A DNA stretch of 11,696 bases from Zygophlyctis sp. KS116 (Eukaryota > Fungi > Chytridiomycota). The translations under genes and the position numbers were made by a program. Below the pieces are notes generated by a model. That model was not told where the DNA came from, did no database searches, and was given only the letters and a program-made list of their open reading frames with translations. Location of the stretch: contig BAAFSQ010000306.1 in the NCBI GenBank assembly GCA_054661495.1, positions 1 to 11,696 on the forward strand. The letters run 5' to 3'. Below, piece by piece: positions 543-11,696 of this stretch (its first letter is position 1; each line of letters starts with the position of its first letter).

Positions 543-3500
543 ATGATTTCGATCTCCTTTAAGAAATCTATCTTGGCATTGGCTCTAGCTGCACTTATAG
601 CTGGAGTAAATTCCCAGGCTGTGAACACAGCAATACAATCACATGAAATCAAGGTTATTATTGCCGTCGATAATCGCTATAAATTAACGGTTGATGGGCA
701 GACAATTCCGGTAAATCCTAACTATGCTTGGTATATGATCAATACTCATAAGTTTACCGTGACAGGAGATGGGCCATGGGTAGTAGCTGTGGATGGTATT
801 GATGAAGGAGTTATTGCGGGCTTCGTTGGCGCAGTTTATGTTGACGGTGTATTGAAGGCAGCTACGGGAACTACTGATCCTGGAATAACTGATTTCAAAA
901 CAATACTAAATCCAACCGCTGGATGGAATCAGTCTGCAAGTTTTGATGATTCACTATGGGCTCTACCAGCAATATGCAGTGCTCAATATTGGGGAGGCTA
1001 TTTGGTTAACAACTTTAGAACTCAAACAAAGACCAATGCTTCTGTCGTATGGTTAGAATCTTGCGGAAAATTTTGGATCACAGCGTACTTTCGAGCTACT
1101 GTGGCTCCTGCAATTAAAATCCTTCCAGAATATTGCGATTCAAACTCTCCACAGTGCTGCCATGTTGTCCGTATGTGGCAATTGCTAGGAAATACAACTA
1201 CAGTTGACCCCAATATCAACAATAGCTGTTGCTCTATGGCTGGAGTTACTTGCAATACAGATCTTGGAACAGTCTTAACGTTGAATTGGACCTCACAAGG
1301 TCTGTCCGGAATAATCCCTTCGAATATTGGAAATTTGCCAGATTTACAAAATATGTAAGTCTACTTGCGAATTGAAATATAAGTGACTTGAGTAACAATC
1401 ATCTTACTGGCACGATCCCAACCCAGATTGGAAAATTGACCAATTTGCAAAATCTGTAAGAATTTTTGGAAAGTAATATTTAAGTAACTTTACGAATAAT
1501 CAAATTTCAGGAGGTATTATCTCTCAGATTGGGAATTTGACAAATTTGATGACGCTGTAATATTTTTAATCTAAAAGACAAAGTGGTCTAGCCAAAAATA
1601 AACTCTCGGGACCAATCCCTCCAGAAATTGGAAAGTTGAACTATTTGGTTGAACTGTAAGTATTTTGCGAATTTAACTCTTAGTAATGTAAACAGCAATT
1701 TCCTCTCCGGAGTAGTTCCAGCTGAGATTGTTGACTTGCCAAATTTGCGAACTTTGTATCCATTGTTTTATTTTTGAAATTATAGAGTTGTTTCTAACAA
1801 TGTGGATCTCACTGGATATATAATCACCAGATGCGGGGCGACTGTGAATGTGTAAATATATCATATTTAAGATTTTTAGAAGAACAGAAGGTACGGGGTC
1901 CACTTTTCGTAGCTGTGTGAATTCTTGCGATTCTTCTTCCCCTCAATGCTGCTGGGCTATCCGAATTTGGAAATTGCTTGGAAAGAATACTACAGCAGAC
2001 TCTACTACTCAAAATGGTTGCTGTTTCTTGCCTGGAGTGACTTGCAATGCTGATCTTGGTACCGTTACGAAAATTGCTTGGAGCAAAATGAGTCTTTCAG
2101 GGCCTTTGCCTTCGGAAATTGGAAAATTGTCGAATTTGAACTCGCTGTAAATATTTCTATATACTAAAAGTAGAGTGACCTTACGAACAATCAGCTCACG
2201 AGATTCATTCCTAAAGAGATTGGCGCTGCAAAAAGTTTGAATTGGCTGTAAATAATTCCTACGTTAAAAATACAGTGATCTTTCTAACAATCAACTCACG
2301 GGATCTATTCATAAAGAATTTGGAAATTTAACAAGTTTGACTTATCTGTAAATTTTTCCTAATGTTAAAATTACAGTAATCTTTACAACAATCAACTCAC
2401 TGGATCTTTTCCAAAAGAAATCGGAAATTTAACAAGTTTGACTGACATGTATTTATAGGCTAGATTTAATATTAAAGTGGTCTGGGTCGAAATGGACTTA
2501 CAGGCTCAATTCCTGGAGAAATTGGAAATTTGATCAATCTGCGTGTACTGTAACCATTATCAATTTTAAATTCTAGTGATTTGCATATGAATCAATTGAC
2601 GGGATCGATTCCTAGAGAAGTAGAAAACTTAGTAAGTTTGACCGTCCTGTAAATATCTAATAATTTAAAAATTAAGTGTGTTGGATCGAAATTATCAAAT
2701 GTCTGGAGCGATTCCTTCCGAATTCGGAAACATGAAAAATTTGGTTAGTAGCAGCATGATTTACCTTTCTCTTTCAGGTGTTGTTCCTGCATCCATCGGA
2801 AATTTAACAAATTTAGTTGAACTGTAACTTTTTTATCATTAATTCAAGGTCTATCGTTGGCAAATCTATCTCAGGACCAATTCCAGCAACGATCGGAAAT
2901 ATGAAGAAGCTGAAAATTCTGTACATAATCACTGCAAATTTACATTTTAGTAATCTTTCGAACAATAGAATAAATGGAACAATCCCATCAACTATCGGCG
3001 CCATGGCCAGCTTACAAAATGTGTAATTTTAATTGAAATTCATAGACAGTTATCTTTCACACAATATATTAAATGAAACAATTCCCAAAGAGATTGAAGA
3101 ATTATCTCAGCTTCGGAATTTGTAAATTTATCATTCTAATTCTTAAGTGCAATTTCTGGAAATGCGAATTTGACTGGAGATTTTTACCCGCGATGTGGAG
3201 TGGCAGTGTAATCATTTTTAAATTAATACAGTAGCCAAGCTCAAGGTACAGGAATTACTCTGCGTAATTGTGTAAACTATTGTGATTCGTCTTCATTTGA
3301 ATGTTGTTGGGTTATACGCTCCTTGAGATTGATGGGAAAAACTACTACGGTAAATGATGTGAGTAGCAATGGCTGCTGTATGATGACTGGTGTAACTTGC
3401 TCGGGAACCCAATCTAATGTTACTTGGATAAGTTGGCCCAATCAAAATCTTACTGGCTCAATACCTGCCGATTTAGGCAACATTAAAAGTTTGCAGAAGC

Positions 3501-4267
3501 TGTAAAATAATCAAGATTTAATTATTAGATATTTAAACAACAATGATTTAAGCGGGCCCATTCCTATATCGGTTGGAAATTTACCAAAGTTAGAGGAGCT
3601 GTAGAAATTGATAAACTAATAATTTATAGTGCTGTTTACAACAACACAAATTTGAACGGAAGCTTTAAGACAAAATGCAGCATCACAATGTAATTTTCCT
3701 ATATTTATGAAAAGATATTCTGCAAATACATCCATTACGATTGAAAAAACAGAGGAGTTGCATTGTATATCTGCCTTAAATACTGAGGTACAGAATCCGC
3801 GTGAAATTAAGGTTACTATTGCCGTTGACAATCGCTACAAATTAACGGTTGATGGACAGACTGTTTCTGTAGATCCCAGTTATTGGTGGGGAATGATCAA
3901 TACTCACAAGTTTACTGTGACAGGAAATGGTCCATGGGTAGTTGCAGTAGAGGCAATTGATGAAGGAGCTGTTGCTGGCTTTCTTAGTGCCGTATATGTA
4001 GACGATGTTCTGAAGGCAGAGACAGGTACTACTGATCCTGGATTAGCAGCTTTTAAGACAGTACTCAATCCATCCACTGGATGGAATCAGTCTACGAGTT
4101 TTGATGATTCACTCTGGTCAAAACCAGCGCTTTGCGTTACTAACCCATGGGGTGGCCTCATCAACAACTTTAGAGCTCAAACCAAATCCAATGCTTCTGC
4201 GGTATGGTTGGAATCTTGCGGAAAAATATTGATTACAGCTAAGTTTAGAGTTGTTGTGGCAGCGTAA
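543..4267 (+). CDS. Secreted lectin-like/LRR mosaic protein, 21 exons, about 1055 aa: signal peptide, jelly-roll lectin-like domain, 3 x [Cys-rich N-cap + 24-aa LRRs + C-cap], second lectin-like domain
   Basis: Hand-spliced exons: 543-1354, 1384-1455, 1485-1556, 1584-1655, 1684-1755, 1786-1851, 1880-2146, 2176-2247, 2276-2347, 2377-2448, 2478-2549, 2577-2648, 2677-2823, 2849-2920, 2951-3022, 3050-3121, 3148-3207, 3235-3501, 3529-3600, 3630-3689, 3715-4267. Total 3168 nt in one open frame, all introns GT-AG. The N-terminus MISISFKKSILALALAALIAGVNSQ is signal-peptide-like. Repeats fit the plant-specific LRR consensus LxxLxLxxNxLSGxIPxEIGxL. No transmembrane segment is seen. Intron 7 needs a GAG acceptor, and introns 6 and 17 have in-frame NAGNAG alternatives. 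Confidence 0.85.
645..1110 (+). other. Lectin-like beta jelly-roll domain, copy 1 (N-terminal)
   Basis: Motifs IAVDNRYKLTVDG, VVAVDGIDEG..AGF and GWNQSASFDDSLW resemble the xDN.(Y/F).L.VNG...GW....FDDS.W pattern of galactose-binding-like jelly rolls (Pleurotus-type lectins, glycosidase accessory domains). Assignment is from motif recall, not a search. Confidence 0.6.
1355..3714 (+). repeat. Array of about 100-bp units (72-nt LRR exon + 25-30-nt phase-2 intron) organised in three modules
   Basis: Thirteen exons are exactly 72 nt. The intron always interrupts the same codon (LxxL|xLxxN). N-cap exons 7 and 18 are both 267 nt with the chosen acceptors, and the C-cap exons are 66, 60 and 60 nt. 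Confidence 0.92.
3803..4267 (+). repeat. Lectin-like domain, copy 2 (C-terminal), a diverged direct repeat of 645-1110
   Basis: Clear DNA and protein similarity, e.g. AATCGCTAyAAATTAACGGTTGATGG and CTGGATGGAATCAGTCT are shared; EIKVTIAVDNRYKLTVDGQT aligns with EIKVIIAVDNRYKLTVDGQT. Confidence 0.95.
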
Positions 4268-4606: not shown

Positions 4607-4975
4607 CTCTTGTTCAGATCTATCCATCGAATATTAAATGTATCCGCAATAATTATGGGGGTAGAATCTCAAGTTACTTGTGATTCCTCATCTTCGGACT
4701 GCTGTTGGGTTATCGGCAACTGATGGATCGGGAAAGCGACAGATCCTGGCATTATTGATTTCAAAACAATACTTAATCCATCCGCTGGATGGAATCAGTC
4801 TGCAAGTTTTGATGATTCACTTTGGTCTATACCAGCAGTCTGCAATATCAACCCTTGGGGAGGTTGGCTAAGTACCTTCCGGTCTTTAACAAAGTCGAAT
4901 GCGTCGGTGGTGTGGTTAGAATCTTGTTGGAAAGTCTGGATAACAGCCTACTTTAGAGTTGTTGTATCGGCTTAA
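4607..4975 (+). pseudogene. Internally deleted paralog of the lectin-LRR gene (signal-peptide remnant + Cys-cap fragment + C-terminal half of a lectin-like domain)
   Basis: One frame reads LLFRSIHRILNVSAIIMGVESQVTCDSSSSDCCWVIGN*WIGKATDPGIIDFKTILNPSAGWNQSASFDDSLWSIPAVCNINPWGGWLSTFRSLTKSNASVVWLESCWKVWITAYFRVVVSA*. There is an in-frame TGA at 4721-4723 and no ATG ahead of the signal remnant (TAG at 4604-4606). The downstream 3'UTR also resembles that of the intact gene. Confidence 0.85.
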
Positions 4976-5076: not shown

Positions 5077-8000
5077 TTAATTAATCATTCCCAATGCCCG
5101 CCTAGTCTTCATTTTTGGCAATTTGGAACAGTTTTCTTGATTTTCTTGATCTTGGTTCTCAACAAATGGCGAATTTAATTCAGAATAGATTTGATCGCCT
5201 CCAAGTTCTGCAATAATGTCTTCATGACTTTTAGTTAGTGTCCATGACGATGGATATCTACTATTGAATAATATATGCTTACTCAAACGCTCTCCTCTTT
5301 GGTGTTACCCCACTCGATTGATCTGCATCCAACTTTCTTATTTGAATTTCTTTGTACAATTTTGATATTTCTGTCCTAAAATCTTTTAATAATTCTTGTT
5401 CCGTTTTGTGAATACAATTTGTCTTGTCTTTAATACTTGAATATGACTCTTGTAGTGTTTTTTTAACCTTCTGAGTCCCAGCTTCGATAAAATCTAGAGA
5501 TCCGTCAAAGGATATTTGGGCCGTTTTTAAAATATCTGACATATAGCTTTTAGATTCATTAACATTATCGATCACTATTTTTCAGTAAAAAATTCATGAT
5601 ATTACTTTTTGATAATGAACTTATCGATAAAGATAGATTTTTTTCCATTTTAGCTCGTTGCTCATTTCCCAAAGATTCTGCTTCTTTTTGAGATGCTTCC
5701 ATATCCGAACAAAAACCATTTAAATAGTTCAAATTGATCTAAATCCTGAATTCAAATGATATACCTTCATATTCTTCTCAAGAATATCTATTGTTTCACA
5801 ATATTCCTCTGCTTTACAAGACAAAAAATTATCAAATTCTGATTGCTCTCTTTTCTGTTGCTGTTTATTCCATTCCCCTGAGGCTAAGTTTTCGGCGATT
5901 TCAGTTGCAAACATCGCATTGGTAGCAGAAACTAAACGATTTAGCCTCTCTTCATTTTTGCTAAAGATTTCCCCAGATTTTTGACAAACTATGTTTAAAA
6001 AGCTTTCTTTTTCTTCCAACATTGTTGATCGCATTGAGTCAATCGTCTGATTAAGGATTTCAACATGTTTTTCCAGCTTTAAATTCTAATATTATTTCCA
6101 ATTGGAGTTTACCTTCTCCAAAAGTCGTTTCTCTCTCCATGAATAAGACTCATTCCCTCCACTTAATGCTTTTTGGAAAAAATCTTTCAATTTTTTACTG
6201 GAATCACTTAAAATTTCCTGAATATGTTGATTAGCATTCAGTTGCTATGATTAGCATAATAAAGTTACTTGTTCTTTTATCTGTGAAATAGCAGATATTA
6301 TATGTTCAGCCGTTTTTCGATCTTTCGCTTGTTGTAATTCGAACGCTTTCTCAAAATTAATAATTGTGGTGTTCAAATCCTTAGCAACAGTATCTAAAGC
6401 AAATACATTTTGTTCAGAAGAAGTCGATACGAAAGTTTGAAAAGTATTGAATAAATCTTTTTGTGCTTTTAGCTGACCAGATATATCCATTTTAAGGCTA
6501 TTAATAATCTAAATAATATAAATGGATTTGCTATATACCTCAGACTTTTGAATATAACTTTGAGACATAATATCCTCTAAATTCATTAATGAATCGTTTC
6601 TTTGGCTATGTGCATTTCCAATCCTTTGTTCCAGATTTTCAATATGATGATGTAAGATGTCTTGCATTGATGTGAAACTCATTAAATTTCTCGCCTCCAA
6701 AGTTCTTTTACGATCTAAAATAGAATTAATTAAGTGACGTTTACCTAGAGCAACATGTACAATCTCTAAATCATTGACGGTTTCGGAAATTGTACTAACG
6801 AGTCCACCTGCAATCTTGTCCAGCTTTTTCTCAGTTTGTTGGTACGCACTGTATCATTAAATGTTCAAAATTATACCCAAGGATTATTTTCTGCTGCTCT
6901 AAAGATAATTGCAGATTCTTGAGATCGATTAACGCTAGTGAAAGTCCATTCTTTTTCGCATCTAATTCCTGTATTGTTTCCTCCAATCGAAACTCGGAAT
7001 TGTTGAGTCTCTTTTCTGTTTCTGCAAACTTTTCATTAAGAGTATTGATTTGCTCCTGCTTGAAAGCTATTGAATTTGTAATTTCCTCGATTCGTGCTTG
7101 ACGTCCTTGATTTTCTAGAAGTAGCAAATCATAGTTCTATCATTTCAAAGTTACTTAATTTACCTCTGATGACATATATATCCCATTTTTATCCCTTGTA
7201 GCCTATTAAAGTTAATATAATAGAATATACCAGTAGATCTGCCTTTAATCGTTCAATTTCAGTAACATATTCCTTGATCAATGCGCGTTTAGTCATTCTC
7301 TGATTTACTTCTGGCTTATTCCTTATATTCTTTGCACGATGAGCATATTCAAGGGTAGATAATGTTTCTTCAAGATTACATTTTGCTGGAGAAACTGCTG
7401 CAATAATACAAGTCTTTGTCCGGCCTCCTAGAGAATCTTGTAAAAGCCTTGTTAGCTTGCTTTCACGATACGGAATATGAGGTGAACGTTCAACCAATGC
7501 ATTGATGACTCTTCCAAGAGTTAACAAACTTTGATTGATCATGCCTGCTTCTTTTGCCCGCTTATTTTCTGCTCCAGATCTTCCAATATTCTCTGATCCG
7601 GCTAAATCAACCAAATTTAGTTTTCCAACCTTTAGTAGTTCTTCCCCTTCTGGTGTGGTTTCCTTTATATGTATTGTAACTGAAAATATACAATGAGAAC
7701 GACTACCGATTACTGAAAGAAACAAACCTGGACATTTCATTCAACTTTGTAGCTGCCATTTGCTTTTTCTTTGATCCTTTTTCCAAAATACTCAAGACAT
7801 CAAGAGTATTTTTTACTGTTATTTCTTCCAATCCTTGAATAACAACTGCCCCTTTCCTGGCCAAATCTTCAAAAACTCTCAATTTCTTAAAATCGTCTGG
7901 GGCAGATAGCAGATCTTTAAGCTCCTCATTGTAAAGCTCTATAAACTAGATTGAGATTGTTGTAAATACCGAAACACGAACAGAATACTCTGCTATATCC

Positions 8001-8402
8001 TTTTCTAGAGACTCGAATAGTGAAATAAGAGATCTAGGAATAATACCTGCATTAGAAGATGATGGTGTATCGCCTAACATTGTGAAAGTCTTCCCTGTTC
8101 CCGTTTGTCCATACGCAAAAACAGTTACATTATAGCCTTCCAAGACCTCTGAGAGCATTCCGGACATAACTTGATCATACACTTGTTCCTGTGAAGCGTC
8201 AGCACTGATGACTTTATCAAATGTATACGTCTTTGTGCATTCATTAAGAGTTTTAATAGTAAGTTCCTTTGAATTCGGAGTTGTGATAATATTTTGAGAA
8301 TTTTCTTTAATCTCTTTGCTACTTCTGGGTCTTTTTATAAGATATAGAATATAACTACCTGACTCTTACAACAACCTGGACATTTGTTTCGCCAGAAGAC
8401 AT
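5077..8402 (-). CDS. bimC: Kinesin-5 (BimC/Cin8/Cut7/Eg5-KIF11 family) bipolar spindle motor, multi-exon
   Basis: Starts [16 protein letters not shown] (ATG 8402-8400, intron 8331-8358). P-loop [11 protein letters not shown], switch I NEMSSRSH (across intron 7703-7727), switch [40 protein letters not shown], neck [11 protein letters not shown], a long coiled-coil stalk and a tail BimC box SGVTPKRR. Stop at 5077-5079. Confidence 0.96.
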
Positions 8403-8689: not shown

Positions 8690-8729
8690 ATTTAATTGCG
8701 GCAAGCCTGCCGAGGATTTAATTGCGGCA
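8690..8729 (+). repeat. 14-bp direct repeat ATTTAATTGCGGCA x2
   Basis: Copies at 8690-8703 and 8716-8729, ending 5 nt before ATG 8735. Confidence 0.85.
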
Positions 8730-8734
8730 CTTTT

Positions 8735-9487
8735 ATGAATAATTCTATTGACTTTAGAACCTTAATATCTCAAGAAGACTTTAACCAGAAACAGCAATGG
8801 GAAAGATCAAGATGCGACATGATGAGATCATTAAGAGATATTTTAGATGCTGTTAGGGAAACACAACAGCAAACAATAAGCCGCATGATTGAGGTGCTGG
8901 AACGGAATGCAATCGGGGCAGGCTCAGTTACTAGCAACGCCTTACAGACCATTCTTGATCAAAAATTCTCTGAGCAGCTTCAAACTATACAATCAATCAT
9001 GGGTAATATTCAGCCATCAACCACTGCAACTGTCCCTGATGTGGATATTTCACAAACAGAACCACAAGTGGCACGACAGGTTTTTCATGTTAATGGGCGA
9101 TTAAGAAGATTGCCAGCGGATTATCAGCTTCCTGATTGTGGACCTGCAGAAGCTTTCAGACAATGGTGTTTTCCAAATACTATGAATAATATCTCTGCCC
9201 TAAAAGATTGCGATAAACATGATTTCTCAGGAGAAAGACGCAGATTTGGAGAACTTCAGAAATTAATGAGAGACTTTGAGCGTTATGCTAATTTAAAAAA
9301 ATTGCCTATTAGAACAGAATCTGATATTGGACTCATAGTCAGTCGCTGGTTAGCGGATAATATCTCGCCATACACTCCCCAAGGCAGACCTCGAACTAGA
9401 ATTCCACAGATGAAATGGACAAACATTCTGAAATTATGGATTACTGAGCCTTCCATGTACGAGGGAACATGCCGCGATGGGGATTAA
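8735..9487 (+). CDS. Intronless 250-aa ORF resembling the C-terminal region of Crypton-type (tyrosine recombinase DNA transposon) proteins; recombinase domain absent
   Basis: First ATG is at 8735 (the track starts at a TTG, 8696). Motifs LERNAIGAGSVT, FHVNGRLRRLPADYQLPDC...FRQW and D.....RRRFGELQKLMRDFE recall oomycete/fungal Crypton-associated proteins (LE.RAIGAGTVT...GRFRRVP.DF.FP). The ORF is directly visible; the family assignment is from memory. Confidence 0.6.
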   Translation: MNNSIDFRTLISQEDFNQKQQWERSRCDMMRSLRDILDAVRETQQQTISRMIEVLERNAIGAGSVTSNALQTILDQKFSEQLQTIQSIMGNIQPSTTATVPDVDISQTEPQVARQVFHVNGRLRRLPADYQLPDCGPAEAFRQWCFPNTMNNISALKDCDKHDFSGERRRFGELQKLMRDFERYANLKKLPIRTESDIGLIVSRWLADNISPYTPQGRPRTRIPQMKWTNILKLWITEPSMYEGTCRDGD

Positions 9488-9566: not shown

Positions 9567-11696
9567 CTATATTGTTAACATTAAATGAGGATCTGAAAGA
9601 GTAATAACGATTGTTGGCCAACAAATTGCAGGACTTTTGTAAAAAAATATAATATAATACCGATACAAATAAAGCTCCTGACGAAACAAACCGCCTTTTA
9701 GCTCCAAGTTTACAGACTTCCAGGATTCAAGGAATGTATACCCTTTTTTTCTAATCAAGTCATTTAAAAGACCTTCCTCAAGCATCTTATGATTAGAGTT
9801 TCTACTTTTACCCATTCAATTAAATTGAGTGCCGAATCAACCAATATTTTTGAATGCGGATTAATTTCAAGCTGTTTCATGATTTCTTCAAATAATAATG
9901 TTGATCTATTTTTGAAGCTTAAGATTTGTTTCATCCAGGTACATTTAAGGATCAAACACTAGAGTTTATATTTGAATTCTTACTTCATGTAGAAAACGAT
10001 AAAACGCCACATAGACAGGAATCGAAATGGGCGCAGATTGACATATTGAGAATATCCGGTCAAATATAAAATCAAAGCAAAATTCATTCCAAACATCGTG
10101 GCAAACCTTGTTTACTCCAAGAGATTTTCTTTTTAATACAAGTAATATGTTTACGATACTTTCTAGAACGATTGCAATCTCTAATTGTCCATCAAATATG
10201 TAAATCTTTTCATTAATAGCGCTTAAATATACTTTTGAGCAGGCGAGATGTATGAGCAAACCTCTTAGCTTAACAAACATTAAATGAGATTTCTTGTCAA
10301 CTTCTTGGAATGGTGCATTATCCAACAAAGTAAGTGATGTTGACATAATTTTCGCTAATGGTGCAATCATCATTGAAGGAAGAGAATTATTCGAAAACTC
10401 TGAAATCAAATGCTCCAAAGACCAGGAATTTCGCATTTTTACAATTTCATTTTCAGAAATCTACTTTTAAAAATGTTTATTCACCTGTGCATTAGGCAAC
10501 TGAATCAAAAGCGACGAAATAAAAAATCCGACACTTATCTTGCTTGCAGTGAAATATCTAAAATCAAGCTCGTCCAATTCATCAAATTCCTGCTTACTAA
10601 ATGAATGAAGGCATTGAATAAGCATCGGGAAACCAATCGCTTCAAGGAAAACTATAATAAGTATTTAAATATTTACCTTGTGGACCCTGATTAGTAGCTC
10701 CAATAATTATCAGAAAGTTTACAACACCCAATAGTTTAGGAATTTTGTCTGATATTTCATTTTTAGAAATAATCCTTTGCATTAGAGCATTATTTTAAGT
10801 TTTACTTTATCAGAAACCCAAATAGTTTCTTGTAACTTTTAAATTGTACATTTAACCCGATAGGAACGTATTTTGCAATCGAAAATACCAATTGATTCAA
10901 AGGATCCCATTCTTTTACATTAAAATATCAATAAAATATACTTTCAAAAGGAATATTTTGTGGTTGCAGCAAAATCCAATCCAAAAAATAATTCCATAAT
11001 TGATACAGCACGTCTGCCTCAAGTCCAGGTGCTATAAATTCAATTAATTTCGCTGATAATTCAACCACTTCCTTTGGATCATTTATACAATCTTTAATGA
11101 TTTCCTAGAGTTAATAAATGCATGTATACAGTGATCATTTCAACCTTGTTTAAGATAGCAATTTCCTTGATTCTAGAATCTAATTCTCCATTGGTATGAC
11201 AATAACAAAGCCTAATTTTTAAATACTGATAATAAATACCAGAATTTATAGAGATTCTTTGTAAAGTTTTTCCAAGAATATCCCAAAACTCTTGATCCTT
11301 TATGGAGCCATTCCAACATTTGTACAGGATGAATGAATAAAAATTCATGTACATTGTTTACATAAAGATTTAGAGACTGGCAGGCCTGTAGCAAGTTTGA
11401 AACAGCGAGTGGCTCTATAGATTAGTCCACGATTTATATACTCTTCTCCAGTTCCTTCAGATCATGATCCACAGCATTACAAAGCAACATTACAAGATAT
11501 AGTAAATTTCTGATTCCGTAAAAACCAAGTGTTTTATCTAATTCATCTATTGAATTAATAATCGACGACTTACCGTATTCATCCAACCAAGTTTCAACAA
11601 CTTGATAAATCCAAACAATTTCATTAATATCCACTGTTTTATAGAGTAAATTCCCTACAAGAATGGCAATACTAGTTTCATGATCAGCGACTCCTG
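9567..11696 (-). CDS. Uncharacterised multi-exon protein (5'-partial), probably alpha-helical
   Basis: A continuous reading frame can be built from the window end (GVADHETSIAILVGNLLYKTVDINEIVW...) to the TAG at 9567-9569 by removing about 10 tiny GT-AG introns. This joins the track fragments 11434-11634, 11212-11394, 11094-11354, 9966-10436, 9764-9955 and 9567-9815. No family motif was recognised. Confidence 0.75.
11620..11696 (-). repeat. Right copy of the 77-bp inverted repeat, lying inside a coding exon
   Basis: Reverse complement of 1-77, in frame with the minus-strand gene. Confidence 0.98.

Follow-up and report, generated by a model that had tools for sequence, protein, structure and literature searches.

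We have identified, on the forward strand at positions 543–4267 of the window (the whole 11,696-nt stretch of DNA that was analysed), a gene predicted to encode a secreted protein of 1055 aa in which three leucine-rich repeat (LRR) solenoids are placed between two CBM67/POL-like lectin domains. The gene is one combination in a large modular family of secreted LRR proteins, comprising ~90 capped-LRR modules with interchangeable ends. CBM67/POL lectins, plant-type LRRs, one-repeat-per-exon shuffling and LRR expansion in chytrids are known already; the combination appears to be unreported, the literature searched having yielded no account of LRRs joined to a CBM67-like lectin or of a lectin-LRR-lectin fusion. 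The first-pass annotation had assigned the architecture to no described family, which holds, within the searches made, for the fusion itself but not for the notion of a lone architecture, since the gene belongs to this large family. The 1055-aa protein is well supported as the design of the gene but uncertain as the product of this allele, in which one intron requires a rare acceptor.

Gene structure and splicing

The region shows a periodicity of ~100 nt, composed of 72-nt exons and AT-rich introns of 25–30 nt, and a list of open reading frames (ORFs) alone yields only fragments of the gene. The splice model consists of 21 exons and 20 GT-AG introns, all in phase 2 and 25–30 nt in length, with 13 exons of exactly 72 nt encoding one LRR each. 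The resulting coding sequence of 3168 nt is open from the ATG at 543 to the TAA at 4267, the single terminal stop. When splice paths were searched without guidance, all introns but one, a stop-free intron of 30 nt, were recovered (19 of 20), and a single false intron was called at the stop codon. The earlier proposal that the small ORFs splice into one protein of about 1055 aa is therefore confirmed by the 20 phase-2 introns and the open coding sequence, and separate small genes are ruled out as the exons share one frame through introns of the same phase. Database searches were run exon by exon. Introns of 25–30 nt also imply that genes of this kind are missed by ORF-based and short-read annotation. 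Across the genome introns are 23–31 nt long (mode 28–29, commonest acceptor AAG), unusually short for a fungus.

In the search of sequencing runs, none of the RNA runs contained the 543–4267 locus. The middle of the gene (1311–3484) is present in contigs from three runs, two of them without any difference. Three of the four indels listed within the gene lie in predicted introns (1374, 2172 and 3617); the fourth, at 4134, is exonic with a depth of 3.8 and could be an error or come from a paralog. Contig depth over the LRR middle (1311–3484) in runs X1 and X2 is about a third of that over the pieces holding the lectin and the 3' flank, which is consistent with shared repeats or several haplotypes.

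Domain organization of the predicted protein

A predicted signal peptide occupies approximately residues 1–24 (543..614), as indicated by hydropathy and by a leader of the same type in the paralogs. The leader is the only clear hydrophobic stretch in the protein, with Kyte-Doolittle 19-mer values of up to 1.84 as compared with 1.59 or less elsewhere. No transmembrane (TM) helix, GPI tail or kinase was found beyond the leader by hydropathy or in the splice model, the absence of a TM or GPI tail being explained by a C-terminus that forms the last strand of a lectin domain. Nor does the predicted protein contain a toxin or translocation feature. These results agree with the initial description of a protein with a signal peptide and no TM, kinase or obvious GPI tail.

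The N-terminal lectin domain (aa 30–189; 630..1109), defined by AlphaFold (AF2) modelling, VIA and a sequence profile, contains a predicted Ca/sugar site consisting of D43-N44, D87 and W150, and C145-C174 is a probable disulfide. Solenoid 1 (1134..1851; splice model and Pfam) begins with a six-Cys N-cap and first repeat encoded by the end of exon 1, followed by four 72-nt repeat exons (2–5) and terminal exon 6. Solenoid 2 (1880..3207), delimited by the splice model, exon comparison and cap-exon matches, consists of cap exon 7, ten internal repeats in exons 8–16, two of which share exon 13, and terminal exon 17; exons 9 and 10 are recent duplicates with 83% nucleotide identity. Solenoid 3 (3235..3689) is reduced to cap exon 18, a single repeat exon (19) and terminal exon 20. 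The counts of 4, 10 and 1 internal repeats originally assigned to three separately capped solenoids are thus correct. The C-terminal lectin domain (~aa 897–1055; 3788..4267) extends up to the stop and is 72% identical to its N-terminal counterpart. The 28 Cys of the protein all lie in the caps or the lectin domains; there are 22 N-glycosylation sequons. All of these features are read from the forward strand.

Individually, LRR exons give weak Pfam LRR_1 matches (E 0.002–0.15) and the cap exon matches the ectodomains of plant HSL1/SERK (E 8e-8). The 24-aa LxxLxLxxNxLxGxIP repeats and Cys-rich N-cap are those of plant-type extracellular LRRs, in accordance with the RLK/RLP/PGIP type recognised at first reading.

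The terminal domains are CBM67/POL-like

The first-pass annotation had described only a lectin-like, jelly-roll domain at each end; both are now supported, by sequence profile and modelled fold, as CBM67/POL-like beta-sandwiches. The alignment-based AlphaFold model of the lectin domain has a pLDDT of 95.3, the single-sequence fold reaching only 42. In VIA, this model matches POL (6li7; Z 10.1, rmsd 3.4, 119 residues) and SaRha78A (3w5n; Z 9.6), and the top nine rows are all POL or GH78 rhamnosidases (Z 7.8–10.1), the next row falling to 6.1. Foldseek returns a probability of 0.99 with an E of only 0.05. With a profile of 143 sequences, E is 7e-25 for POL and 6e-14 for 3W5M, a rhamnosidase that bears a CBM67, and the nearest named Atlas cluster is PF08531 'Lectin' (score 0.89). 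Pfam itself gives no match for either end domain or for the caps; PF08531, not matched directly, is matched by 2 of the 143 kin. A PA14 domain was rejected, as only its first half matches (E 8e-5, Z 3.2), more weakly than POL/CBM67, and the rows for botulinum toxin and alpha-toxin returned by the fold searches are low-scoring beta-sandwich noise (probability <0.1 or Z <5).

POL-type domains bind Gal, GalNAc, GlcNAc and Rha (PMC11186620), with Ca2+ held by two Asp (PMC11512411). In both end domains the corresponding pair is Asp-Asn, whereas the family consensus is Asp-Asp; the first Asp is at least 90% conserved, and a further Asp and a Trp-Gly loop are conserved at POL-aligned positions. The fold and profile matches, together with the Asp and the Trp-Gly loop at these positions, suggest that sugar binding by the end domains is likely.

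A nine-sequence profile retrieved 144 relatives of the lectin domain, none of which (0/144) contains an LRR motif. The closest named kin are unnamed proteins of Batrachochytrium dendrobatidis, B. salamandrivorans, Homolaphlyctis, Polyrhizophydium and Irineochytrium (e.g. KAJ1334608.1, XJO73573.1), with up to 37–45% identity. These chytrid proteins contain 1–7 lectin domains and several have a signal-like N-terminus, as here. In the amphibian-pathogen chytrids and their relative, 'hypothetical' proteins of Batrachochytrium and Homolaphlyctis (P0005–P0012) carry up to seven tandem CBM67-like domains and constitute an unannotated lectin family. In related metagenome sequences (L038:355-1125 and P0013), the lectin domain follows other modules, one without a Pfam match and one of ephrin-like Cys repeats; the differing partners indicate that the lectin domain is a mobile module.

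Source organism and neighbouring genes

The genome encodes chitin synthases and IFT57, the nearest named matches of an Hsp70-family (Ssz1-like) protein are from chytrids (40–42%), and samples containing this DNA come from freshwater, estuaries and wastewater. The source is a flagellated, chitin-walled freshwater chytrid, probably of the Rhizophydiales as judged from the lectin kin; no sign of an animal or crop pathogen was seen. Downstream, a kinesin motor gene (~5100–8402, reverse strand; Pfam E 9e-53), probably kinesin-5/BimC from its motifs and coiled-coil tail, is convergent with the LRR gene and has very short introns as well. It is followed by an intronless 263-aa ORF on the forward strand (8696–9487) of higher GC content (42%) with no Pfam match, possibly transposon-derived, and by a multi-exon gene on the reverse strand (~9800–11696) which reaches past the contig end and includes one 156-aa ORF without a Pfam match.

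A modular gene family

The cap exon has 89 matches and the lectin domain seven in the 12.7-Mb, 1175-contig assembly. A length-filtered word-index search with cap 1 gave no match, a result of little weight given that filter. Script-generated models of ~20 paralog loci share a leader-cap-LRRn plan with variable ends, which include a lectin (C136, C682, C1165), PAN, ephrin-like Cys repeats, a TM tail or, in some paralogs, a Cys domain without known identity located after a Lys-Arg motif. No signalling domain was found in the lectin-LRR-lectin gene or in the modelled paralogs. Genes of the cap-LRR-lectin type also occur in three other freshwater metagenome contigs (L037, L039 and L067). Many LRR paralogs (L043:3820-4341, L044:6339-6845, L055, L056 and L059) terminate in a Cys-containing domain of ~170 aa that has a Lys-Arg (Kex2-like) site inside it and gave no Pfam match; this domain may be released as a peptide.

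The closest paralog, C488, is 96–98% identical over the promoter-leader region and cap 1, while the lectin between leader and cap 1 is 73–77% identical over most of its length. That N-terminal lectin shares ~99% identity with the one at the C-terminus of C1165 and 97% with a relic at 4739–4965. Such patchwork identity is seen among lectin copies of the paralogs, and the near-identity of the C488 lectin to that of C1165, with flanks matching the gene studied here, indicates that lectin domains are transferred whole from one position or gene to another. An overlapping repeat unit is common to C488 and C1165, which may together represent a single sister gene built on the same lectin-LRR-lectin plan.

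The relic derives from a sister gene and spans 4630..4975 on the forward strand, its junction being found within single contigs of runs X1 and X2. It is internally deleted: a decayed leader and cap start run directly into the C-terminal half of a lectin domain. This half-domain is 97–100% identical to the lectin of C488/C1165 and matches without difference the C-terminal half of P0001, a protein of another assembly.

Intron 7 and the product of this allele

Intron 7 (2147..2175, forward strand) maintains the reading frame only with a rare GAG acceptor ending at 2175; use of TAG at 2173 or AAG at 2170 gives a product of 499–500 aa. Among 130 distinct LRR-LRR introns in the fetched loci, acceptors are AAG in 90, TAG in 32, CAG in 7 and GAG in one, the single GAG being that of intron 7. 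This dependence renders the full-length product uncertain for this allele. A contig from an independent sample (depth 4.86) has 2 nt fewer at intron 7, which creates a canonical in-frame TAG, although this deletion may be an error.

There is accordingly a substantial possibility, falling somewhat short of an even chance, that, in a family evolving by birth and death, this allele is a copy in decay or truncated. Splicing at TAG 2173 would then lead to a lectin-LRR product of 499 aa or to degradation of the mRNA, the 1055-aa form being made only by other alleles or paralogs. In addition to the uniqueness of the GAG acceptor (1/130), the 27-nt intron produced by the TAG splice is of a common length, conserved Gly and Pro are missing from exons 8 and 9, and a deleted relic gene lies 360 nt downstream. 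Conversely, all 14 downstream exons are open and in register, the commonest intron length is 29 nt, an upstream AG is skipped in other introns too, and no indel is listed at intron 7 in runs X1–X3. Truncation would be compatible with functional models at the level of the family.

Diversification and its functional interpretation

In 211 distinct 72-nt LRR exons from the fetched loci, the five concave positions are the most variable (3.3–3.9 bits). By rough counting on paralog exon pairs chosen by intron similarity, which describes the family and not this gene alone, dN/dS at concave codons is 1.76 (32 exon pairs; Fisher p 0.012) or 1.40 (54 exon pairs; p 0.044), as compared with 0.39–0.40 elsewhere. 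The rate of change in lectin loops is roughly double that of the core, but positive selection on them was not found (pN/pS ~0.3–0.5). The suggestion of a diversifying molecule consequently stands at the family level, through concave dN/dS >1 and domain swaps, and does not extend to the lectin loops, whose pN/pS is below 1.

The most likely reading, at about even odds, is that the protein is a secreted multivalent recognition or adhesion protein of a freshwater chytrid, bridging surface sugars and proteins at attachment. The protein would be secreted and glycosylated (22 sequons), each end domain would bind a terminal sugar of the Gal/GalNAc/Rha type, as do POL and CBM67, via Ca2+, and the three solenoids would offer variable concave faces to protein ligands. 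With neither an anchor nor a signalling domain, it would serve as a bridge that holds the wall of the zoospore or thallus on a host or substrate surface and contacts surface proteins or enzymes of the host. New specificities would arise in the germ line as 72-nt phase-2 exons are duplicated or lost, as the concave face acquires point substitutions, and as paralogs exchange lectin loops or entire lectin domains in a conversion-like manner. In a Planktothrix-parasitic chytrid, carbohydrate-binding genes are elevated in the zoospore fraction (PMC13391722). This observation, the POL/CBM67 match, the 89 cap and seven lectin matches in the genome, the variable paralog ends, the concave dN/dS, the divergent lectin between near-identical flanks in C488, the patchwork identity of lectin copies and the LRR-lectin fusions of other freshwater metagenomes support a role in recognition or adhesion, which is weakened by Asn in place of Asp as second Ca ligand, a lectin pN/pS of ~0.3–0.5 and the possible truncation at intron 7.

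The same diversifying signature fits a soluble defence receptor or agglutinin of the fungus directed against bacteria, mycoparasites or viruses, comparable to shrimp Leulectin or lamprey VLRs. We regard this as unlikely, as a signalling domain is absent from the gene and modelled paralogs and no phagocytic arm that could make use of an opsonin is known in a single-celled fungus. Nevertheless, animals do have soluble LRR pattern receptors (PMC8812994), and chytrid LRR expansions have been proposed to serve sensing or immunity (PMC13618815).

Selection on the concave face is typical of PGIPs. Combined with the plant-type 24-aa repeats and cap and with a secreted, anchor-free protein, it could also indicate a PGIP-like inhibitor whose LRR faces block wall-degrading enzymes of host or competitor while the lectin ends only park the protein on the wall. 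Three separately capped solenoids of very unequal length, one with a single internal repeat, suit an inhibitor of a single enzyme poorly, and this role appears improbable.

Returning to recognition or adhesion, a more specific and rather speculative form is a combinatorial two-channel repertoire, in which a CBM67-like glycan-reading cassette, exchanged whole, and protein-reading LRR cassettes together set host or strain specificity at zoospore attachment. If true, fungi would have their own counterpart of variable recognition receptors, and the repertoire would be a candidate explanation, at the molecular level, of why chytrids that parasitise plankton have narrow host ranges. Host recognition by aquatic chytrids is an open question, with lectin-sugar hints only (PMC13391722), and two candidate modules, lectin and extracellular LRR, are joined here in one predicted secreted protein. 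The foldable 160-aa lectin domain is directly suited to a glycan array, and gives a name to the unannotated lectin family of the Batrachochytrium tandem arrays.

Comparison with known systems

The 24-aa repeat consensus and Cys-rich N-cap are shared with plant HSL1, SERK1 and PGIP. Unlike plant RLK/RLP proteins, the gene product has no TM or kinase, three serial capped solenoids and lectin ends, and its six-Cys cap, unlike those of plant extracellular LRR proteins, lacks a Pfam LRRNT_2 match. PGIP is a single solenoid which inhibits polygalacturonases, in contrast to the three solenoids and lectin ends found here. Shrimp Leulectin likewise joins LRRs to a lectin. It is also a soluble recognition protein (PMC8812994), an analogy only, as it combines a C-type lectin with animal LRRs.

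Extracellular LRR recognition proteins were held to be near-absent in fungi (PMC2939053), whereas high-copy LRR-receptor-like orthogroups are common to chytrids, with host sensing or immunity proposed (PMC13618815). As far as the accessible parts of these sources extend, the expansions reported there (PMC13618815; earlier survey PMC2939053) resemble the LRR expansion described here, but a lectin fusion or exon-cassette structure is not described in them. LRR genes of Ectocarpus with 72-nt exons (PMC3341825) and of Tetrahymena with 90-nt exons and phase-2 introns (PMC6564038) share with the present family the correspondence of repeat and exon, same-phase introns and shuffling; selection on the concave face is common to Ectocarpus and this family. 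The Ectocarpus genes encode ROCO or kinase proteins; a ROC-COR or kinase signalling domain is absent from the gene studied here, and the family is characterised by secreted proteins, swappable lectin ends and introns of 25–30 nt.

The end domains resemble POL/CBM67 in beta-sandwich fold (Z 9.5–10.1, rmsd 3.2–3.4 Å, ~120 residues), profile homology, the acidic Ca-site position and the Trp-Gly loop. They differ in having 19% identity, Asp-Asn for Asp-Asp, an extra helix and Cys pair, and a last strand which is unaligned and possibly circularly permuted. Furthermore, POL/CBM67 domains are joined to a hydrolase or only to themselves, whereas here they are joined to LRRs.
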